Positions 18,109-29,055 of a stretch of 64,000 bases of DNA are shown here, piece after piece; position 1 is the first letter of the stretch; each line of letters opens with the position of its first letter. The notes under the pieces were generated by a model. The model saw only the letters and a list, made by a program, of their open reading frames with translations. It made no database searches and had not been told where the DNA came from. A program made the translations under genes and the position numbers. Location of the stretch: positions 73,829-137,828 of the forward strand of contig NW_027192197.1 of the NCBI RefSeq assembly GCF_041956535.1, read 5' to 3'. The stretch comes from Calcarisporiella thermophila CBS 279.70. Taxonomy: Eukaryota > Fungi > Calcarisporiellomycota.

Positions 18109-19219
18109 TCTGATGGAGATGGGTAAACGAATTGGGGAATGAGAAGTAAATAAATTGAATGAAAACACGCAAGAATAGCACGATGCTTACTTTTCCATTC
18201 TATTTTTAATTCTATTACTCTCATCAGCGGGTAATTTGGTCATCATTTTCAAAATAAGGGAAGGAGAAGTATGGCAATTATTGCCACAAAATCTACGTGG
18301 ATATACCGCAGAAGTGAGATTATTGGGATCCGCAATACGCTATTATCGGGACATGTTAACCTTTACCTTTGAAGTTCACCGGATTCACTTCAGCTACCAG
18401 ATGAATGAGCAAAAGGAGAGCGATGTGACAATTTCCAAAATAAAATATTAAGGAGTGTAGTATTAAGCTTAGAGACAATTTCGAAGGCAGAAGACAGGAG
18501 AACGAGATAAATAAGGAACATCCAAGATACCGAGCGAAACAGAATTGCAGAGTGATCGGTATGCTGGAAATCTACTGGACAAAGCATCAATTCAGCCGTT
18601 AGCTAATTGGAAATTTGTGAAATAATATAAGTAATTCCTAATTGGAATATCAGAATCACATTAGTTGGGTCAGAGATGATTCTGCACACGATAGAATTGG
18701 TAGTGCTCCAGAAACAGATATCGATGATACCGAATGAGATTAAAGGATCTTGTCAATACCATTTTCATAGTTAGCAAGATCTCTGGTACCACTATGGGAG
18801 TGTTGGAGATGTGAAGGAAAATTTTTCACCAACTGCTGCTATCGTCGATACCACCGTCTCTTTGGTTAGAGTAGCCCCGCAGGAGCGGTAGGTTATTTAT
18901 TAAGACACAGATGCAAAAGCAATGCTTTGATCCTGGTCACTTCTAAACGATTGCCAAGAAACAGACGCTCCTCTTCATCTATTGGTTTCACGATAATTAG
19001 AGTCGGGGGCTGAATAGTGGCGCTCAGGACTTTTTAGTTCTTTGATAGAACAAAGAATTAAATTTTGTAATGGATTACATTTGGAGACTATGTTTAATTT
19101 TATTAGACAAGGTGTTCCCAAGAAAAGAAATAAAAAGAAAGAGATTTAGAATGAATCGTTGATAAAAGGAAATATATATATAGATAGCAGTTTGAGGTGC
19201 CAAGCTACGTAAATCCTCC

Positions 19220-22200
19220 TTAGGCAAATCCGAAGCCAGAGCTGCATTCTTGTATGGCTGTAAGAAGCGTTTGCCTAAGTTGCTCGTATGATTCGTATTC
19301 AGGTAGATCAAGCTGGTTAAAGCTAAGATGATTATAAAATAAATTAGAATAGAGCACAAATTGGTTAGTTCCTAAATTTGTAAATTCACGTACCATGTGT
19401 GTGCAGATGGCAATCGATTGGTGCTAGAAAAGTCTTTGTGTATTTGGAATTTTTGCACCCCATTCGAACCCTGCAATGCACTAAAGCCTTCAAGTGGGAC
19501 TTTACTTGTTCCAGTCACAAATTGGAGCAGTTTTGCACGCTCTTCCTGGTCGAAACTACGTACCGCTCGCCAGAACCATTGCACCTGTGGAGAAGATGGA
19601 GTGTAGGTCTGATACTCTGTGTTGTTGCGCCAGTCGTCGATATCTATATCGGGCATGCCTGAGATCAACAGCTCCAATTCTTGCTCGTTGAAAATACGGA
19701 TGAGGTGGGGTGGTACGATATCATGCAGTCCCGCAAGGAATGCTTTGATTTGGTCTTGAATGGCGAGTGTGAGCTTCTGTTCCGTGACGAGTTTTACATA
19801 CTCTCGCTTATTTTCTTCCGTAACCTCAATATCCCGTCCTCCAGGCTTGAGGTCAATGGTGCGTGTCTTTCCAAAGTCATCCGTCTCAACGCTAAAGGTC
19901 AAATCGATAATGTCGGTGATATCATTTTCGAGCATCCAAACCAAGCTCTTGTAGTACTCGGGATCGACCGCCTCCACATCTCGGTAGTCAACAGAGCGTC
20001 CAAGCATATGCTTATAGAAAGAACGAGTGAAGTATGCGTCTAATAACCGACCATCATAAATGGCTTTGCCAATCACTCGCCCCACGAACTACAGAAGGAT
20101 AAACAAAATAATTAATAAGCAAAGAGATCTAAAAAGAATAAAGCTTGTTGAAATTGCCGTACCCTGAAATATGCCAGGTGATCTGGATTTACCCAGGATG
20201 CACGATTTGGCTGGTAAGTCATTCGGCCTGCAGCTGATGGCTTGAAAAGTGCATAGTCTGGGTTGAACATGGCCCTGGCTAATACAGAGAACCATTCCCT
20301 AGTCACTCCACCTACGTCAACTCCCTCTTCGTCGTGGAAACGTACGCTTAATTTTCCATATTTAATTTCGTCACCCGAACGGCCTTGCAGTTGATGGAAC
20401 GAGTCTTCAAAGATATATTGTCGCCGCACATTCAATTGCAGTGTGCCATGATGGAATCGAGCACCTGTACGTTTATGCAGTTGTTGATGGAAGTAGTTGC
20501 GCTTGTTATCGAACTCAAGCATCTTAGGATTATGGACCAGAAGCGAGAAAGAGCCACTCATTAACGAGGGATTGTTTCGTACGAGTAGATTCAGGATTTT
20601 GCGGTGCTCTTCAGTGAAGGCAAAGAAAAGTTCTTCAGGAGTTGTCGCTGTACTCACAAGCTTAGTTGTTGCGTTTTCCCGAGATCGCTCGTCAGCAAGG
20701 GGCATCTCGGCAGGTGGCCCCTTGATCGCAACATATTTGGATACCACCATGAAGGATTCAACGAGAGGAAGAAGAACTGTCGCGACATGAACTACGTCAG
20801 GCTTATCTCGCAGGTGACCAAGGCATTCACTCAGACGTTGCCAGAGCGGAGTGAAAGCCAATTCGTCATAGATATGTGTGATTTTATCATCTACCGCCAT
20901 CGCCTCACCGCTCCCTACAGTTTGATCACCCGATTTAGGTGCTGGAGTACTCTGTTCTGTCAAATCCTCCTCGGAGGTTGAAGCAGACACCGCAGAAGTT
21001 GAGGTTGCAATCAGTGTAGAAGCACCGTTGCTAGCATTGCTAGCTGTAGATGACTTCCGTGAGTACATGTAATCGATTGTCTTCAGTACACGCAATAATT
21101 TGGCCTGCTGAGACGAAGGGGCAGAAAACTTGATCAACGTTGCACCTTGGATATCTGCTCCGCTCTTTGCCTCCCGTAAAAGCCCCTCTAGTTCATCCAG
21201 GTTGCCCCGAATGCAACGTCCAAGATCTTGAGCGCTCTTTGCCAGTTCTGCGGTGATTATATCGCGCGCACCCTTGAGGGAGGAGAGGTGTTGGATGATG
21301 GATAAAGTGTGTTGAAAAGTCTTGCCCGAACATTCCCCTGCTGTCAACACATGTACCACGAGTCGCAAATAGTGATCGGAGATCTCGGGAGGTTTGAGGG
21401 CGGGTTCCTCTTCTGTCTCCTTCACCTCGTTCTTATCCTCCTTCACTTTATCCTTGTCGGAGTTAGCGGCAGATTCGCCAATATTGGCCTGATTCTCTGC
21501 TTCAGTTTGATTAGACTCCCCACGTTGCTGTGATGAAGTTACCGGTGTGGTAGAGGAATTGGCGGTTAAAGCCTCTTGCGCATTAGTATTACCGTCACTA
21601 CCATCACTTTGAGGCAAATTTCCGCTTGCTGTCATGTCAACATCACCTCCATGCCTTTCTGTGCTATTTTCTGCCGTTGAACCATCGGGTTTTTCTTTGC
21701 CAGGCTTATCCTCCTTTTTCTCTTTCGCCAAAAACGATAACGGACGGCACACCATTGACATTAAATGTGTTAAATTATCCATAAGAGAGGTATTTTTTAC
21801 GAATACGGGTCGATCAAGCAAACTCAGCAATATTACAACCGGGTATTTGGTTGCGGCAATTGACTCCTTTGATTTCCCTTTTCGATTTCCGGGCCGTTTG
21901 AAGAAACCCAAATTTTCATTTTCTTGTAAGAAAAAAGTTACCACATCCTCGTTGTAGCTTGCAACATAGATAAGTGCTTCTAAACTGCGTTGCATAATAA
22001 GATTTGGCATTGCACGTTGATGGGGCTGATGATGCTGGTGATGTTCCTTGCCACTTGGGGTTTTGGATTTTGACGCGGATCGCGGAGTCTTTCCTGTTCG
22101 ACTGCACAGCTGCGCAAAACTTCGATCAACGGCTGCAAGATCCCCACTTCCATCCTGTAAGATTGCGAGGATCAGGGTGATTAATTCGGAACGCGTCTTT

Positions 22201-24345
22201 GCATTTTCACATAAATTTAATAGTAGGCGGTGGTGCATGCTTTTTGCAACTGGCTGTGGGAGAAACAGCAATCGAATCAGAACGGAAAGCCCAGATCGAT
22301 CCACAAGCTGTATTGCATCTTTTTTATCTGCTTTTTTTGTCTCTGTGGATGCAATGGCAGAGGTCGGTTCTCGGATAATGCCGGGTGAGCGCGAAGTTCG
22401 ACGAACCACATTGCTATACCGTCGACTAGATCGGCTCCGCAGCGTATTTGCCTCTGCGATAATGGAAGGCGGTAAGGCTGACAAGAAATCATCATCTTGC
22501 TCTAAGAGAACCGTCTGCCGTAGCTGGGGATCCAGAGATGCAATAAAATCTGCAGGGTCCATATCCGTAGGACCACCTTCCTCTATTCTATCTCTGTCAC
22601 CACTGTCACCTTCACGGCGCAAAGCCCGCTGACGCTCAAGGGCTTCATCATGCAAAATTTCTTCTCGAATCTCAGGTGGTAACGCTTCCAAAAACTCTTC
22701 ACTTATCGTTACTCCGGTTTCTGCACCATTTAGGCTTGCCTGGCGCTGTTCACGGAAATGCTGAGTAAATACTTCTTGCCGAAGATCATCGGGTAGTGCT
22801 TCCAGGAAGGTAGGATCAATCCCCGTATTGGTAATATCAACTTCGTGCCCGTTTATCATAACAGTTGTGCGTTCACTCTGTTCATTCTGCTCGCCCTGCT
22901 CATCCCGACTTGGTTCACCGGTAGTTTCGATGGCGGTTGGTTCAGGAGCAGTGGGTGTCGCGTGATCTTCTTCCATAGGCCCACTTGGTCCTGAAGATTC
23001 TTCAGGTGCGGTACTAATAGGTGCGGCAGGGGTGGTAGCGCTAGGAGTAGCGTCATCTCGCATTTCCTCTGTAGCTGGGCGAGCATCTGCTGAAGATTCA
23101 GCAGTGAACTCTTCTAGTGCTGTCTCAGTGGCTAATGATGCCGTTGTCCGCTCTGTTCCTTCTTCACCTTGATCTTTCCTCTCCTGGTCGTTTAGGTGAT
23201 CATTGTCCGTTTCAGGTAACGCATCCATCTCCAGGTCTGATCCGCGTTCCTTCGCGAGAGCTGCTGTACGCTTTTTCTTCAACTCTTTACGTCGTTGCAG
23301 CTCCTCACGAGTTTCAGGGATGAGCTCGAGTAAAACGCGGTTGACCAAATTAACTGCTTTGTCCGACATGCTGTTGCCATAAAGCATTCTGCTCTCCTGA
23401 TACCAACGATCGCTGGTATTAAGTGGCATGAAGTCAGATGCAGGTTTAGAAGAATCACCAGAGGTACCGACGCCTAATCCTCGTGATCCACCAGGATACA
23501 CAGCTACACCTAGTGGACCGCGGTCGCCACCTGCGCCCATACGATCATACTCAACCCCACCAACAAAGTTAACACCTTCAATGCGGAACATAGACATTGA
23601 ATCTATTGATAAAGTTATAACGTTATAGAAATTAAACTTGAGAATTCAAAAATTAATCGCATACCTGATTGACGACCAGTTCGTCCTTGAAGTCCACCCA
23701 AGCCGACTGATCCCGCAGGTGGCCCTCTATTCACTAATAGAGGATGCATGTTGACATCGTCATTCGTACCCGATGCTCCAGGGGGTGGAGGAGCAAAAGG
23801 CGGTGCGGATTGAGTAAATGATTCGATTAAATGATTTAAAAACCCTAATCTTTCTGATGCTCCTCCTTCCCGATCGTCATTGCCCGAACGACTTGCATCA
23901 CCGTCTGCAGGATAAAGGCGGATATCAAGGGCGGCCCGGCGCATGGGTACTACACGACCGCTAAATTGTCGACGCCCGCCGCCTAAATTCAAGAGTGTTT
24001 GAAGCGCGTTTGTTGTAAGTGGTTCGTCTTCGACAAAAAATCCAGAAGCATCTCCTAGATCAATGGTAAAACCGTATCGTCCATCATTGCCACTGCCACC
24101 CAAAATCATCTAAAAAGGATAATTAAATAGATATAATACAGAAAATATAAACGAAAAATCAGCATAATCAGCATTAATCATTAAGCTAAATTTAAAAGAG
24201 TGATCATTGCCTCATTGTCGTCAAGAATCTCGTCAGGATCTTCGTCCTCCTCGTCGTACTCCTCTTCGTCCATTTCTTCGTCCTCCTCTTCCTCCTCGAC
24301 CTCTTCCTCAGGTACGGGTTCATGCGGTGGTGGATTTTGAGGCAT
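19220..24345 (-). CDS. TOM1: Tom1/HUWE1-type HECT E3 ubiquitin ligase, C-terminal half only (acidic linker + UBM/DUF4414 repeats + HECT), 5 exons, ~1,600 aa
   Basis: UBM repeats [17 protein letters not shown] and [17 protein letters not shown]; [29 protein letters not shown]; HECT ends [40 protein letters not shown], with the catalytic Cys codon split by the last intron. Confidence 0.92.
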
Positions 24346-24653
24346 TACGATTGATATGAATGATAGATAGATTGCTCGTTTCTTTTATTTTATAAATTGA
24401 GGTCTAAAACTAGAAAGAAAACGAGAGGGGATAAAATTGGTCTTCAATGAAAGATTAATGATCGCGAAAAATATTGCGATCTTCATAAAAAGAAAAAGCT
24501 ATACTAACTGGCAGGTGACGTATTTGTGATACGTATCAAATATTGAACAGAAATATATTCATAAAGCGAAAATTTCTATTATAATATATCAGAACATATA
24601 AACAAAGTTGGTTTAAAGAAATTGCCCCCCTCCCTCCCCCTCCCAACACACAC

Positions 24654-24717
24654 ACTTGTCAACAAATGGGTTACTGATGAACTACTACTTCAATAGAAAC
24701 CCATTTGTTGTTCAAGT
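24654..24717. repeat. Near-perfect inverted repeat / hairpin (~64 nt)
   Basis: Perfect arms CAACAAATGGGTT (24660-24672) and AACCCATTTGTTG (24698-24710), extended by ACTTG/CAAGT outside and CTGATGAA/TTCAATAG inside. Confidence 0.85.
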
Positions 24718-25081
24718 ATCAGAGCATATATAGCTAATTTTATTTTATTTTATTTTTTTTGCTATAGAACTCGAATATAGATATATTTTCTAACAATAGA
24801 ATCATTTAAAACTTCAACATAAGCAACGACACTGACCGATAAATAGAGGCTATGCCTTGAAATAAATTGAAAATTGTCATTCAAATTAATGAAAAACGGT
24901 CCAAAATACCGCTATTAGTCAAATTTACAGAATTCCTTTCCATTATCCCCCAGAATGGTATCACGGGTTTTATCATAAATTATTCTTTGGGGTCTACAAA
25001 AGCTTCTTTCAGCCCACGAGAAGAATACGAAATAGTTTAAATTTGTTCGTAATTATAAAAAGTCAGTAAACATTAATAATT

Positions 25082-26294
25082 TCATTGTTGCCCGGGTCTA
25101 TTTGCCTATAAAAAAATATTCAAGAACAAGTTGTGTCAATACAGTCAAATAACACAAGCTACCTAAAGCGAATTGGAAACGAAACATATGTGATGTTTAC
25201 CTGGAAAAGTCCGGTGTAATATCCAGCAAAATACCATGCCATTAATAGGTTCGCCAAATTCTCATTATCAACTAAGATAGATAAAATAAACACTATATCC
25301 TTTCCAAAAGTAATATTAATATACTCACTTCCATTCGCAGAGGGAGTAGGAATGTTTGAGTTCAAAGCTTGTGAATTCATAGGTGTAGGTATAGGTATTG
25401 GCATGCTCATTGGCATAGTTGGCGCCGGCATCTAAAAAGTCGTATAATTAGAATTTAATAAGTAGGAGAATCAAGGTGAAGGGCTACCTGAAGTCGTGGA
25501 CCCCAACCCATCGCACCCGCATTATGTGTACCAAACATCGGGTGCGGATGTGGGGGAGGATGTGAAGGTAAATGTGTGGGAGGTGGAGGAGGGTGTGGGA
25601 AGCCTTGATAGTGCGAGAAAGGATAAGGCGGATATGCATTATATCTAGTATCCGGGGGATAGCCTGCCCCACTCGCATCCGTAGGTTGCTGAGGTTGTTG
25701 CAATTGCTGCGGTAGCTGAGGCTGTTGCAGTTGAGAAGAGGAGGGAGTATATCCATCTGCCGGGGGATAAGGGTAGTTAGTGTATGGCCATCCCCAAGAA
25801 TACTGATACTGTTGAATAGGATCCTGTGTAGTATCCTCTTTATTCTTCGTGCGCCGCCCGGGTTTTGGCTTGTGAGATTTGGGTTTATTATTTTCATGCA
25901 CTTCGGCATCTTCCTTCTCATCATTTTCTCTTTCGTTTCCAGTTTCAGGCGAGTCAATATTGTTTTGAAAGCCTATTTCTTCCTGCAATTCTCCCTCATC
26001 AAACTCAGCTTCAGCCTCGCTAGGTAGTTTTTTCTTTCTGTTTAAAATTTCTGAAGTAAATAAAAAACAAATATGTGTAGCTTTTCGACATGATTTACCC
26101 TTTCATTTTAGGTGGTTTCGTAGGTACAGGTGGTTTACTCCCTGAATGATATAACTAAATAAATCCAAAAAAAGATATTTTAAAATTAGTCTTGAACTTA
26201 ATTATTTGATTAAAACCTAAGAACTTACTTGGTATTCTTTTACAGCCGCTTCCCATGCCGCGATAAGCTTACTGTCATCCCATGGATCAGCCAT
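25082..26294 (-). CDS. SMN1: Survival motor neuron protein (SMN), multi-exon
   Basis: N-terminal Gemin2-binding motif MADPWDDSKLIAAWEAAVKEYQ; Pro-rich middle; C-terminal YG box LANLLMAWYFAGYYTGLFQ; last exon ANRPGQQ*. Confidence 0.92.
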
Positions 26295-26468
26295 TTTCGC
26301 GATCCAATTTTAATCGACGAGAAAAAGAACAGTCGACGACTTTGAGTGGCTTATTTAATTTTTTTTTTGATTTCCCGCTTTCGATCATTCATTAAAGAAT
26401 TAACTTTTAATATTTCAAATAGCCTCTGGAAAGAAAAATCAATCTGTAGACAAGTGTATTGAGGGACC

Positions 26469-29055
26469 ATGTCAGATGCGAAGTATTTTCAGAGAGGTAA
26501 GCTTTAGCGAATTTAAATGTATTATATTTACTTGTTTATTTTATACTTTTACTTACTGCTCGCCTCTCCATTTTCCTTAAGGTAAAATCCAAGAGCTTCG
26601 TGCCGAACTCAACTCGGATAAGAGAGATTCGAAGCACACAAGAAAAAAAACTACAATGAAAAAGATTGTTGCCAATATGACGATGGGCAACGACATGTCT
26701 CCGCTCTTCCAAGATGTAGTTGCGTGTATGAACGTACCAGTCTTAGAAGTGAAGAAAATGGTGTATCTCTATTTGATCAACTACGCGAGAAATAAACCTG
26801 AGATGGCATTGATGGCATTAAGCACTTTCATGAAGGTGAGCTTATTCATGTATCTTCCTACCTAGCATTTATAACGAAAATGTGTTCTTTCCATTTAAGG
26901 ATGTCGAGGATCCCAACCCTCTTATCCGTGCGCTCGCAATTCGTACAATGGGATATATCAATGTAGATAAAATACTTGATCACCTTGTTGACCCACTTCT
27001 AACATGCCTGCGCGACCAAGACCCTTATGTACGCAAGACTGCGGCAATATGTGTTGCAAAACTTTATATGCACGACCCGGCACTTGTGGAAAACGAGCGT
27101 TTTATTGATATGCTGAGAGACATGTTAACAGACTCCAACCCAACGGTTAGTCACATCATGTTTTTGCCGATGATAACATGTTTTCTAATTCTTAAATTTT
27201 AGGTGGTGGCAAATGCAGTGGCCTCCCTCACCGAGATTTGTGAGCGTTCAGAAAATATACAGTTAAAGCTTAATATGGTGATTGCGAATAAATTGGTGGC
27301 AGCTTTAAACGAATGTTCAGAGTAAATATATAAAAAATGATCCTGCCAGCTCTTTCTCCGCATTAACTTATATCTAATCAAATATCTAGATGGGGACAAA
27401 CTTATATTCTTGAAGCGCTTATTTACTTCGTACCACAAGAGGCTGGGGATGCTGAACTGCTTGCAGAGCGAATTGCTCCTAGATTGCAACATGCAAATTC
27501 TGCGGTTGTGTTGAGTGCGATCAAGGTGATCATGTATCTGATCAACTATATGTCGAAAGATGAGGATATCAATAAAATGTGTCGGAGACTATCACCTCCT
27601 TTGGGTAATAAAAATTATCTTAATTTGGCTAGAATAGATTGGCTAACCTTTTCTTTTTATTCTAATTATGTCTTGTTTATTTTGGATTTAGTAACTCTCC
27701 TATCTAAAGAACCGGAAGTTCAATATGTAGCTCTTCGTAACATCCTTCTTGTAATTCAAAAACGACCAGAGGTGCTTCAGAATGAGTTGCGAGTATTCTT
27801 CTGTAAATATGACGACCCAATCTACGTTAAGCTTGCTAAGCTTGAGATCATGTTTCGGCTAGCGAATGTGAACAACGTGGATAAAGTCCTTTCCGAGTTA
27901 AAAGAGTAAGCTGAAATGTTTATTAGAAAATCAACTTTTAATTGGCAAACCTAAAGTGCCTCAATACACTGAAAGATATGCGATTGAAGTGGATGTAGAT
28001 TTTGTGCGAAAATCTGTAAGATCGATAGGACGTCTGGCAGTTAAAATAGAGTCTGCAGCGGAGCGGTGTATCTCTACCTTGTTAGAACTTATCCAAACTA
28101 AAGTGAACTATGTCGTTCAAGAGGCTGTTGTCGTAATCAAAGTAGAGTATAGACAGATTATAAATATCTAAGGTCATAATATTAAACGTGGTTTGTAGGA
28201 TATTTTCCGCAAATACCCAAACAGATACGAAAGTATTATCAGCACACTTTGTGAAAATCTTGATTCTTTGGATGAGCCTGATGCAAAAGCAGCAATGGTA
28301 TGGATTATTGGACAGTACGCAGACAGAATCGAAAATGCGCATGAACTGCTAGACGATTTTCTATATAGTTTTCTAGAAGAACCAGTCGAAGTAGGTTTCG
28401 AAAAAAGTTTACAAACAAGAATATCCAAGCCTTAATTGTTTCCGCATCATTATAGGTGCAGTTGGCACTATTAACGGCGACAGTCAAGCTTTTCATAAAG
28501 CGTCCTACCGCTGGACAAGATCTAGTCCCAAAGGTGCTTAAGTGGGCAACCGAGGAGGTAGACAACCCTGATCTCCGTGATCGTGGGTTTATTTACTGGC
28601 GGTTACTCTCAACTGATCCCGCTGCAGCAAAGGCAGTAGTCTTATGTGACAAACCTGAAATATCTACTGAGACTGAGCGGATGGATCCTTTCATGTTGGA
28701 GGAACTTGTGCTGCACATTGCGAGCCTTGCAAGTATATACCACAAAAGCCCTACGACCTTCATCCGTTATGTTAAACCCAGGTTTTTAATCCCATCTCCG
28801 GTGTTGAATCGGAGTTTGCAAGCTGGTGGAGTTTCCGATACTTTGTACAAGGCGCCTGGAGCATGGCGGGAAAATTTAATCCACGATCAGTAAAAATCCT
28901 CTTATCTTTTTCTATTTAGTTATTTTTTTTTTAACTTGATTTTTTTTGTTAGAGATTTGAATGCAACGGAAAACCCTTATCTTAGTAGTCACGAATTCTC
29001 TCAACAACCACAGCAACAGCAGGGTGTGGACGATCTCTTATTCTCTGATCTATGA
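26469..29055 (+). CDS. APL1: Adaptor protein complex beta subunit (AP-2 beta/Apl1-like; trunk only, no appendage), ~9 exons
   Basis: MSDAKYFQR|[10 protein letters not shown]; [15 protein letters not shown]; [15 protein letters not shown]; [17 protein letters not shown]; short tail ending DDLLFSDL*. Confidence 0.9.

Follow-up and report, generated by a model that had tools for sequence, protein, structure and literature searches.

Probable natural fission of the giant HECT ligase Tom1/HUWE1 at its acidic tether in Calcarisporiella thermophila

Tom1/HUWE1 is a giant ubiquitin ligase that acts in quality control and stress, and structural work is actively addressing its ring architecture, its open and closed states, and its acidic domain. 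Here we describe its orthologue in Calcarisporiella thermophila CBS 279.70, beginning with the gene at positions 19220-24345 (minus strand) of a 64-kb stretch of contig NW_027192197.1 (G000:C7:73829-137828), the whole of which we call the window. The closest described enzymes are single polypeptides. Yeast Tom1p (3,268 amino acids, aa; PDB 9dns, 9egk, 9eld, and 9mhp) runs from the Head and Neck (DUF908/DUF913) through a UBA-like region, solenoid, disordered acidic domain, Tower, UBM, and body to HECT; its acidic domain (residues 1873-2131) lies inside a disordered stretch (1871-2219), the fold is unchanged when that domain is deleted, and the left part of the domain carries most of its in vivo function (10.1101/2024.07.08.601072). 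Human HUWE1 (4,374 aa; PDB 7jq9) forms an ARLD1-4 ring with a long disordered ARLD3-ARLD4 region that bears the Tower and UBMs, and it has WWE and BH3 inserts. Most of the ARLD3-ARLD4 interval (residues 2259-3179) is disordered, WWE and HWA pack on either side of the Tower, and the ring is closed where ARLD1 meets ARLD4 (PMC8476073). Across single-chain enzymes the covalent tether spans 350-900 residues and is invisible in every cryo-electron-microscopy map. The C. thermophila chain is instead cut about 165 aa into a linker of about 421 aa, and its two parts lie on different contigs. Because this region is disordered in both HUWE1 and Tom1p, the severed covalent link would be a floppy tether. 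We conclude that the single TOM1/HUWE1 orthologue of C. thermophila has probably undergone a lineage-specific fission in the acidic linker, leaving two genes whose products would assemble non-covalently.

The window gene has five exons and encodes a 1,605-aa product that corresponds to the C-terminal half of Tom1/HUWE1, here the C-half (GenBank VTP21DRAFT_10304, P0001; coding length 4,818 nucleotides, nt, or 1,605 codons plus stop). The best protein match of its large exon is P0001 itself, from C. thermophila, at 99% identity. Exons were placed by aligning P0001 to the DNA and inspecting the boundaries. Homology searches used single exons, or the database proteins P0001 and P0121 (the N-terminal half, below) where a whole protein was needed, and never a spliced model of our own joining. 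From 5' to 3', the gene and its upstream flank comprise the following features:

24346-25082, minus strand: intergenic DNA of ~737 bp from the stop of an SMN-like gene to the C-half ATG; AT-rich and genome-unique.
24385-24387, minus strand: in-frame TAA, 14 codons before the ATG at 24345; closes the reading frame on its 5' side.
24211-24345, minus strand: exon 1; ATG plus 45 codons, 59% Asp/Glu.
24110-24210, minus strand: intron 1; 101 nt, GC-AG boundary, donor GCAATG.
23665-24109, minus strand: exon 2; Gly/Pro-rich disordered part of the linker.
20163-23602, minus strand: exon 3; Tower hairpin (P0001 residues ~251-310), three UBM repeats (~448-640), ARLD4-like solenoid, and start of HECT.
19394-20088, minus strand: exon 4; most of HECT, its last two bases being the first two of the catalytic Cys codon.
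19220-19322, minus strand: exon 5; third base of the Cys1572 codon and the HECT C-terminal tail ...GFGFA, with TAA at 19222-19220.

The product thus reads as an acidic head, a Gly/Pro-rich disordered stretch, the Tower, three UBM repeats, the ARLD4-like solenoid, and HECT. Pfam recognizes three PF14377 (DUF4414) UBM repeats upstream of HECT (E = 9e-28) and a full HECT domain (PF00632, E = 7.5e-106, P0001 residues 1300-1604); it detected neither the WWE nor the BH3 insert of HUWE1 here. The catalytic residue, Cys1572, is present within ...SAHTCFNQLDLP. Its codon is split TG/C by the 71-nt intron 4 (window 19394/19322, minus strand). Among solved structures, the C-half matches yeast Tom1 (E = 6e-216), human HUWE1 (E = 2e-167), and HACE1 (E = 1.6e-115), with the NEDD4 family weaker; on this sequence comparison it is closest to Tom1/HUWE1 and not to other HECT ligases. 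An earlier note, made from the letters of this DNA, had placed the gene start at ATG 24345 behind an in-frame stop and had described an intact chain of about 1,600 aa through the UBM repeats and a HECT domain with its catalytic Cys; both descriptions hold.

Exon 1 bears directly on where the chain was cut. By sequence it is the retained right-hand portion of the ancestral acidic linker, and it gives a weak colinear alignment (E = 0.011) with the continuous linker exon of an Endogonales-like relative. If intron 1 is left unspliced, the frame stops at 24181, so splicing of this intron is required to hold the acidic exon in frame; across the junction the annotated protein reads ...DDNE/MILGG.

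The earlier note had seen no DUF908/DUF913 reading frame upstream of the C-half, and it had reasoned that an intact, separately terminated gene of that type elsewhere would support fission. No DUF908/DUF913 is encoded within the 64-kb window. Across the whole assembly (28.16 Mb, 116 contigs; strain CBS 279.70, accession JAZGQU000000000; PMC11393059), a Pfam search places these domains at a single site, C8:787309-790071 on the minus strand. This site belongs to a 12-exon gene for a 2,340-aa protein (G000:C8:782625-790448, minus strand; P0121, VTP21DRAFT_11160, XP_069252710.1), here the N-half. The gene is intact and separately terminated, which favours fission. By Pfam, P0121 carries DUF908 at 86-398 (E = 7e-78), DUF913 at 458-824 (E = 1e-101), and UBA at 1293-1333, and its only solved-structure matches are HUWE1/Tom1 and UBA-containing chains. 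GenBank annotates both halves as uncharacterized proteins.

Both ends of the N-half are well defined. The coding sequence runs from an ATG at L015:9449 to a TAA at L015:1628-1626 (L015 is C8:781000-790999), and its N-terminus reads MKIKKSPPKK..., which we take to be the canonical Tom1/HUWE1 start. The final exon, of ~1,250 codons, closes in a hyper-acidic tail that contains an 11-His run (L015:1700-1760; G000:C8, minus strand) and ends ...EEEMWTGTEGEEEEY-TAA. Beyond the stop lies AT-rich, unique non-coding DNA, and the GenBank model P0121 uses the identical stop. The Endogonales-like relative, represented by Logan contig L017, has HHHHHFH at the matching place in its linker (L017:2830-2860), so the His run would be ancestral and no by-product of the break.

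Each half is present once. When the two large exons were searched in six frames against the assembly, neither a full-length Tom1 nor an extra copy of either half turned up, the matches beyond the loci themselves being HECT domains of unrelated ligases; a full-length Tom1 elsewhere, of which the window gene would be an unexpressed partial duplicate, had been one of the earlier note's counter-cases. Tom1-type UBM repeats are confined to the window gene in a whole-assembly search, no HECT was found on contig C8, and no relic of the complementary half was found beside either gene. The sole other UBM motif in the genome lies on C29 (L014:1276-2662 = G000:C29:118909-120295, minus strand) and adjoins an IMS (Y-family DNA polymerase) domain; that gene is probably a Rev1-type polymerase unrelated to Tom1.

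Indirect evidence from the assembly argues against a false join at the two loci. The loci lie 93-98 kb into C7 and 782-790 kb into C8, both contigs being ~1.2 Mb long (1,236,294 bp for the one carrying P0121), and neither the window nor the C8 loci contain N letters. The genome contains no second copy of the 755 bp before the C-half ATG or of the 926 bp after the N-half stop. The longest exact word common to the two junction regions is 14 nt and GAG/GAA-rich (9-13 nt in shuffled controls), so there is no repeat through which an assembler could have swapped arms; together with the unique flanks, this speaks against a repeat-mediated misjoin. Given their orientation, even directly adjoining C8 and C7 contigs would keep the halves at least ~1.9 Mb apart, which excludes a single transcription unit.

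To locate the cut, we measured the linker between two anchors, the last ordered helices of the N-part (...ILRPLEQLTRIAIKM) and the Tower motif (F.P..T..RW.QE). It spans 363-590 aa in 41 single-chain orthologues (median 446). For C. thermophila, the 165-aa tail of the N-half (43% D/E) and the 256 aa of the C-half that precede the Tower sum to 421 aa, within the orthologue range. Judged from these alignments, no ordered element is missing and the break is inside the disordered acidic linker, as the earlier note had proposed. The summed halves measure 3,945 aa, and the single-chain proteins that reach the HECT end in the same comparison measure 3,246-4,188 aa. A Tower motif of the form F..P..T..RW..E is conserved across the aligned 32 sequences. 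The Tom1/HUWE1 domain set is complete across the two genes, with no single polypeptide of ~3,000-4,400 aa carrying it, and the left part of the acidic domain remains on the N-half.

Relatives of C. thermophila carry the gene unbroken. The nearest homologues are less than 50% identical, and the unsplit Mucoromycota orthologues are 37-49% identical to the halves. Single proteins are found in Ambispora gerdemannii (P0124, 3,687 aa), Actinomortierella ambigua (P0125, 3,852 aa), and Hesseltinella vesiculosa (P0135, 3,778 aa); P0124 and P0135 each occupy one gene span (12.7-13.8 kb) and carry the annotation DUF908-DUF913-UBA-UBM-HECT. The Endogonales-like contig L017 begins within the gene and has no break in the linker: it encodes the last 882 aa of the N-part, then three short linker introns, then the C-part in cis. 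A gene fission is recognized by unsplit outgroups and by parts that are non-overlapping, complementary, single copy, and each separately terminated; by their sequences the relatives are unsplit, and the C. thermophila parts have all four properties. About 4 kb downstream of Tom1 in H. vesiculosa lies a 747-aa gene with a Cas12f1-like TNB domain (TnpB/Fanzor-like; MCGT01000022.1, L021:26871-29302).

Databases hold other half-Tom1 models that look alike at first sight. They measure ~1,400-1,600 aa (UBM + HECT) or ~1,700-2,600 aa (DUF908 + DUF913) and begin or end in the acidic linker. They differ from the C. thermophila pair: in six of the eight both parts follow one another in cis, either separated by 34-340 nt or with an unannotated N-part upstream. 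A survey of fungal HECT genes had already flagged short Tom1 models as potentially truncated proteins (PMC5913265). We examined P0002, P0208, P0196, and the Sugiyamaella, Rhizopogon, and Circinella models directly, and judged P0122 and the Arthromyces models from their records; the eight look-alike fungal half proteins are contig-edge truncations, open reading frame (ORF) calls, or annotation artefacts, not fissions. A fission shared within Endogonales was suggested by Jimgerdemannia P0002, which begins in an acidic run, and was rejected: P0002 starts at base 34 of its contig, and the sister sequence L017 is continuous. A widespread fission, suggested by many N-half-like proteins of ~2,500 aa, fared no better, since both of those examined (P0208 and P0196) are ORF calls with a UBM/HECT ORF 340 and 34 nt downstream in cis, respectively. 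The two-gene TOM1 of Sugiyamaella lignohabitans traces to a missed canonical intron in the acidic linker (GTAAGT...ACTAAC...TAG; L022:9888-9941). Its annotation in CP014503.1 as adjacent genes of 2,170 and 1,480 aa is probably an error over one gene. The Rhizopogon vesiculosus half model has its N-part directly upstream in cis, and that of Circinella minor (JAEPRB010000032.1) has an unannotated N-part upstream in cis at L023:1304-8860; the annotated C. minor UBM/HECT protein of 1,394 aa is probably a truncated gene model. Jimgerdemannia flammicorona P0122 sits on a 7.3-kb contig and may end at the contig edge, and two Arthromyces matolae models are marked partial in GenBank and lie on separate contigs. 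C. thermophila is the sole examined case in which the halves lie on different contigs and have finished ends.

Further context was sought around the orthologues and in other sequence collections. The genes around Tom1 in Jimgerdemannia, Ambispora, and Hesseltinella have nothing in common with those at either C. thermophila locus, nor do the three sets match one another, so synteny is uninformative on the ancestral locus and on the partner breakpoint. A metagenome scan with P0001:46-420 found no relative, and the collections searched held no second Calcarisporiella genome or close relative.

We next asked how the two halves compare with unsplit orthologues in sequence constraint. The N-part and C-part were aligned separately with those of 23 complete, unsplit orthologues, and 1,696 and 1,056 well-occupied columns, respectively, were retained. 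Mean distances to the 23 orthologues are 1.161 for the N-part and 0.684 for the C-part, both inside the orthologues' own range, and the N/C distance ratio is 1.70 for C. thermophila versus a median of 1.76 for the other pairs. By this sequence measure neither half looks unusually diverged or relaxed.

Structure prediction addressed one of the contacts that would hold the halves together. The Tower (P0001:240-335) was modelled against the HWA/ARLD3 part of the N-half (P0121:1470-2175) in three runs, with three controls. The predicted complex scored 0.83 (median of three runs) on the interaction prediction score from aligned errors (ipSAE), and the best of the three controls scored 0.00; by way of calibration, the ipSAE mark is met by 51 of 78 solved complexes and by 2 of 108 mismatched pairs. 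At least 61% of contacts were common to the three runs, and the partner predicted local distance difference test (pLDDT) was at least 65. Predicted contacts centre on the invariant Tower residues R259/W260 and on conserved N-half residues at ~1610-1794. The model suggests that the interface is retained and is not proof of binding in trans.

Three outcomes had been offered in the earlier note: a ligase assembled from two chains, a mini-HUWE1 acting without its substrate-binding half, and trans-splicing. The two-chain ligase is favoured, because both halves are as conserved as unsplit orthologues and the Tower is predicted to dock on the N-half in trans. A mini-HUWE1 is disfavoured, because the N-half is retained intact. 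Trans-splicing, which would join two pre-mRNAs into one full-length Tom1 mRNA, finds no consistent donor/acceptor pair and is in our judgement very improbable. The last codons of the N-half, GA/GTACTAAG, do resemble the GTAC-type donors of these genes, and relatives have introns inside the acidic linker; against this, an in-frame TAA stands 14 codons before the C-half ATG, the intervening AG dinucleotides are out of phase with the candidate donor, and Rfam detected no spliced leader or other RNA family in the region. To our knowledge, genic trans-splicing of this kind has not been established in fungi.

The main rival to a fission with a selected two-chain enzyme is a real, recent or strain-specific rearrangement that broke TOM1 and left its piece or pieces unexpressed, or the C-half acting alone as a truncated ligase. 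Such pieces would still look intact because too little time would have passed, no close relative offers a date for the event, and yeast TOM1 is non-essential, its deletion being temperature-sensitive and not lethal (10.1101/2024.07.08.601072). Chance could also have supplied the tidy ends: by a rough estimate, a stop within 1-2 codons of a breakpoint in AT-rich DNA and an in-frame ATG within ~26 codons upstream would arise together roughly a few percent of the time, so the gene ends are suggestive and not proof. We nevertheless regard a recent break as unlikely, since both genes look finished at the break, where an ATG or a stop of their own is flanked by unique AT-rich DNA; neither piece is accompanied by a relic of its counterpart; a spliced GC-AG intron keeps the acidic exon 1 in frame; both halves show normal divergence; and the Tower/N-half interface residues are kept. 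An assembly artefact, in which one intact TOM1 was rendered as two reciprocal chimeras (C7 and C8) joined in the acidic linker, seems less likely again. It draws some plausibility from the single public assembly, from the position of the break in low-complexity GAG/GAA-rich coding DNA, and from the mix of technologies and assemblers that the genome paper used across genomes (PMC11393059). It would require two reciprocal misjoins at one gene with no causative repeat, and chance would have had to place a stop immediately past the acidic run at one junction and an ATG with an in-frame stop ahead of it at the other; the 14-nt shared word, unique flanks, lack of N gaps, and depth of at least 93 kb inside ~1.2-Mb contigs speak against it as well. 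Duplication followed by degeneration is unsupported, with no relic of the other half beside either gene, and an old event of that kind would leave none either.

Several considerations also weigh against fission with two-chain assembly as we propose it. Without a close relative the fission is undatable, and a very recent split would pass the same rate test. The complex score may come from the predictor's memory of solved HUWE1/Tom1 structures, where the identical contact is intramolecular, and the modelling covers the Tower dock, one of the proposed interfaces. Promoter activity of the 737-bp region upstream of the C-half is assumed, and the layout is observed in one assembly of one strain.

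That upstream region (24346-25082) must, on the fission reading, contain the promoter and 5' untranslated region of the C-half. No Tom1 coding relics were found in it, and an Rfam scan of window 18500-26500 returned no match. An imperfect inverted repeat lies in this intergenic DNA upstream of the ATG (window 24660-24710; an opposite-strand self-match of 82% over 51 nt, with no Rfam match). The SMN gene that the earlier note had put ~740 bp upstream is confirmed as an SMN-like, YG-box gene on the same strand, with its stop near 25083, and downstream of the C-half lies a gene for a DOCK-type guanine nucleotide exchange factor. On C8, the next gene downstream of the N-half is a forkhead-domain gene (L009:7661-8911; G000:C8:779660-780910, minus strand). 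If the fission was a reciprocal exchange, the SMN and forkhead genes would have adjoined in the ancestor.

We propose that the fission fell inside the linker between the N-terminal solenoid (Head, Neck, ARLD1-3, UBA, and HWA) and the Tower/UBM/ARLD4/HECT part. A chromosomal rearrangement would have turned one gene into two independent ones, which either sit on different chromosomes or are separated by ~1.9 Mb or more. The N-half would have been left with its 165-aa acidic/His11 tail and own TAA, and the C-half with its own ATG and 45-aa acidic head. How the break arose is more speculative. A breakpoint inside an ancestral linker intron is plausible because relatives carry introns inside the linker, as is a reciprocal exchange with another locus; the N-half stop may lie just past a former GTAC donor, or the exchange may have involved a gene for a small acidic protein.

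If both halves are expressed, their products would assemble non-covalently into the usual basket-shaped ligase and be active as such. We infer this two-chain assembly because the matching parts of single-chain enzymes are already held by packing interfaces only. The interfaces would be the Tower on HWA/ARLD3, the closure of ARLD1 (Head/Neck) onto ARLD4/HECT, and solenoid packing. On balance, with odds a little better than even, we favour a functional two-subunit holoenzyme in which a substrate-binding N-subunit of ~260 kDa and a catalytic Tower-UBM-HECT C-subunit of ~175 kDa are joined through the Tower dock and the ring-closure interfaces.

The literature searched holds no earlier report of a split HUWE1 or Tom1, and what we describe is probably a natural Tom1/HUWE1 fission at the acidic tether, well supported and apparently unreported. 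If its two halves form one working enzyme, it would be the first giant HECT ligase known to be split naturally. Continuity of the covalent acidic tether would then be dispensable, the Tower dock and ring-closure interfaces would suffice to hold the enzyme together, and the left and right parts of the acidic domain could function from different chains. For structural work, the organism would offer a thermostable two-piece enzyme, and the split suggests a practical route in which a thermophile Tom1 is expressed as two manageable pieces; Calcarisporiella Hsp104 already features in several structural and biochemical papers. The stoichiometry or exchange of subunits would offer a possible new layer of regulation.

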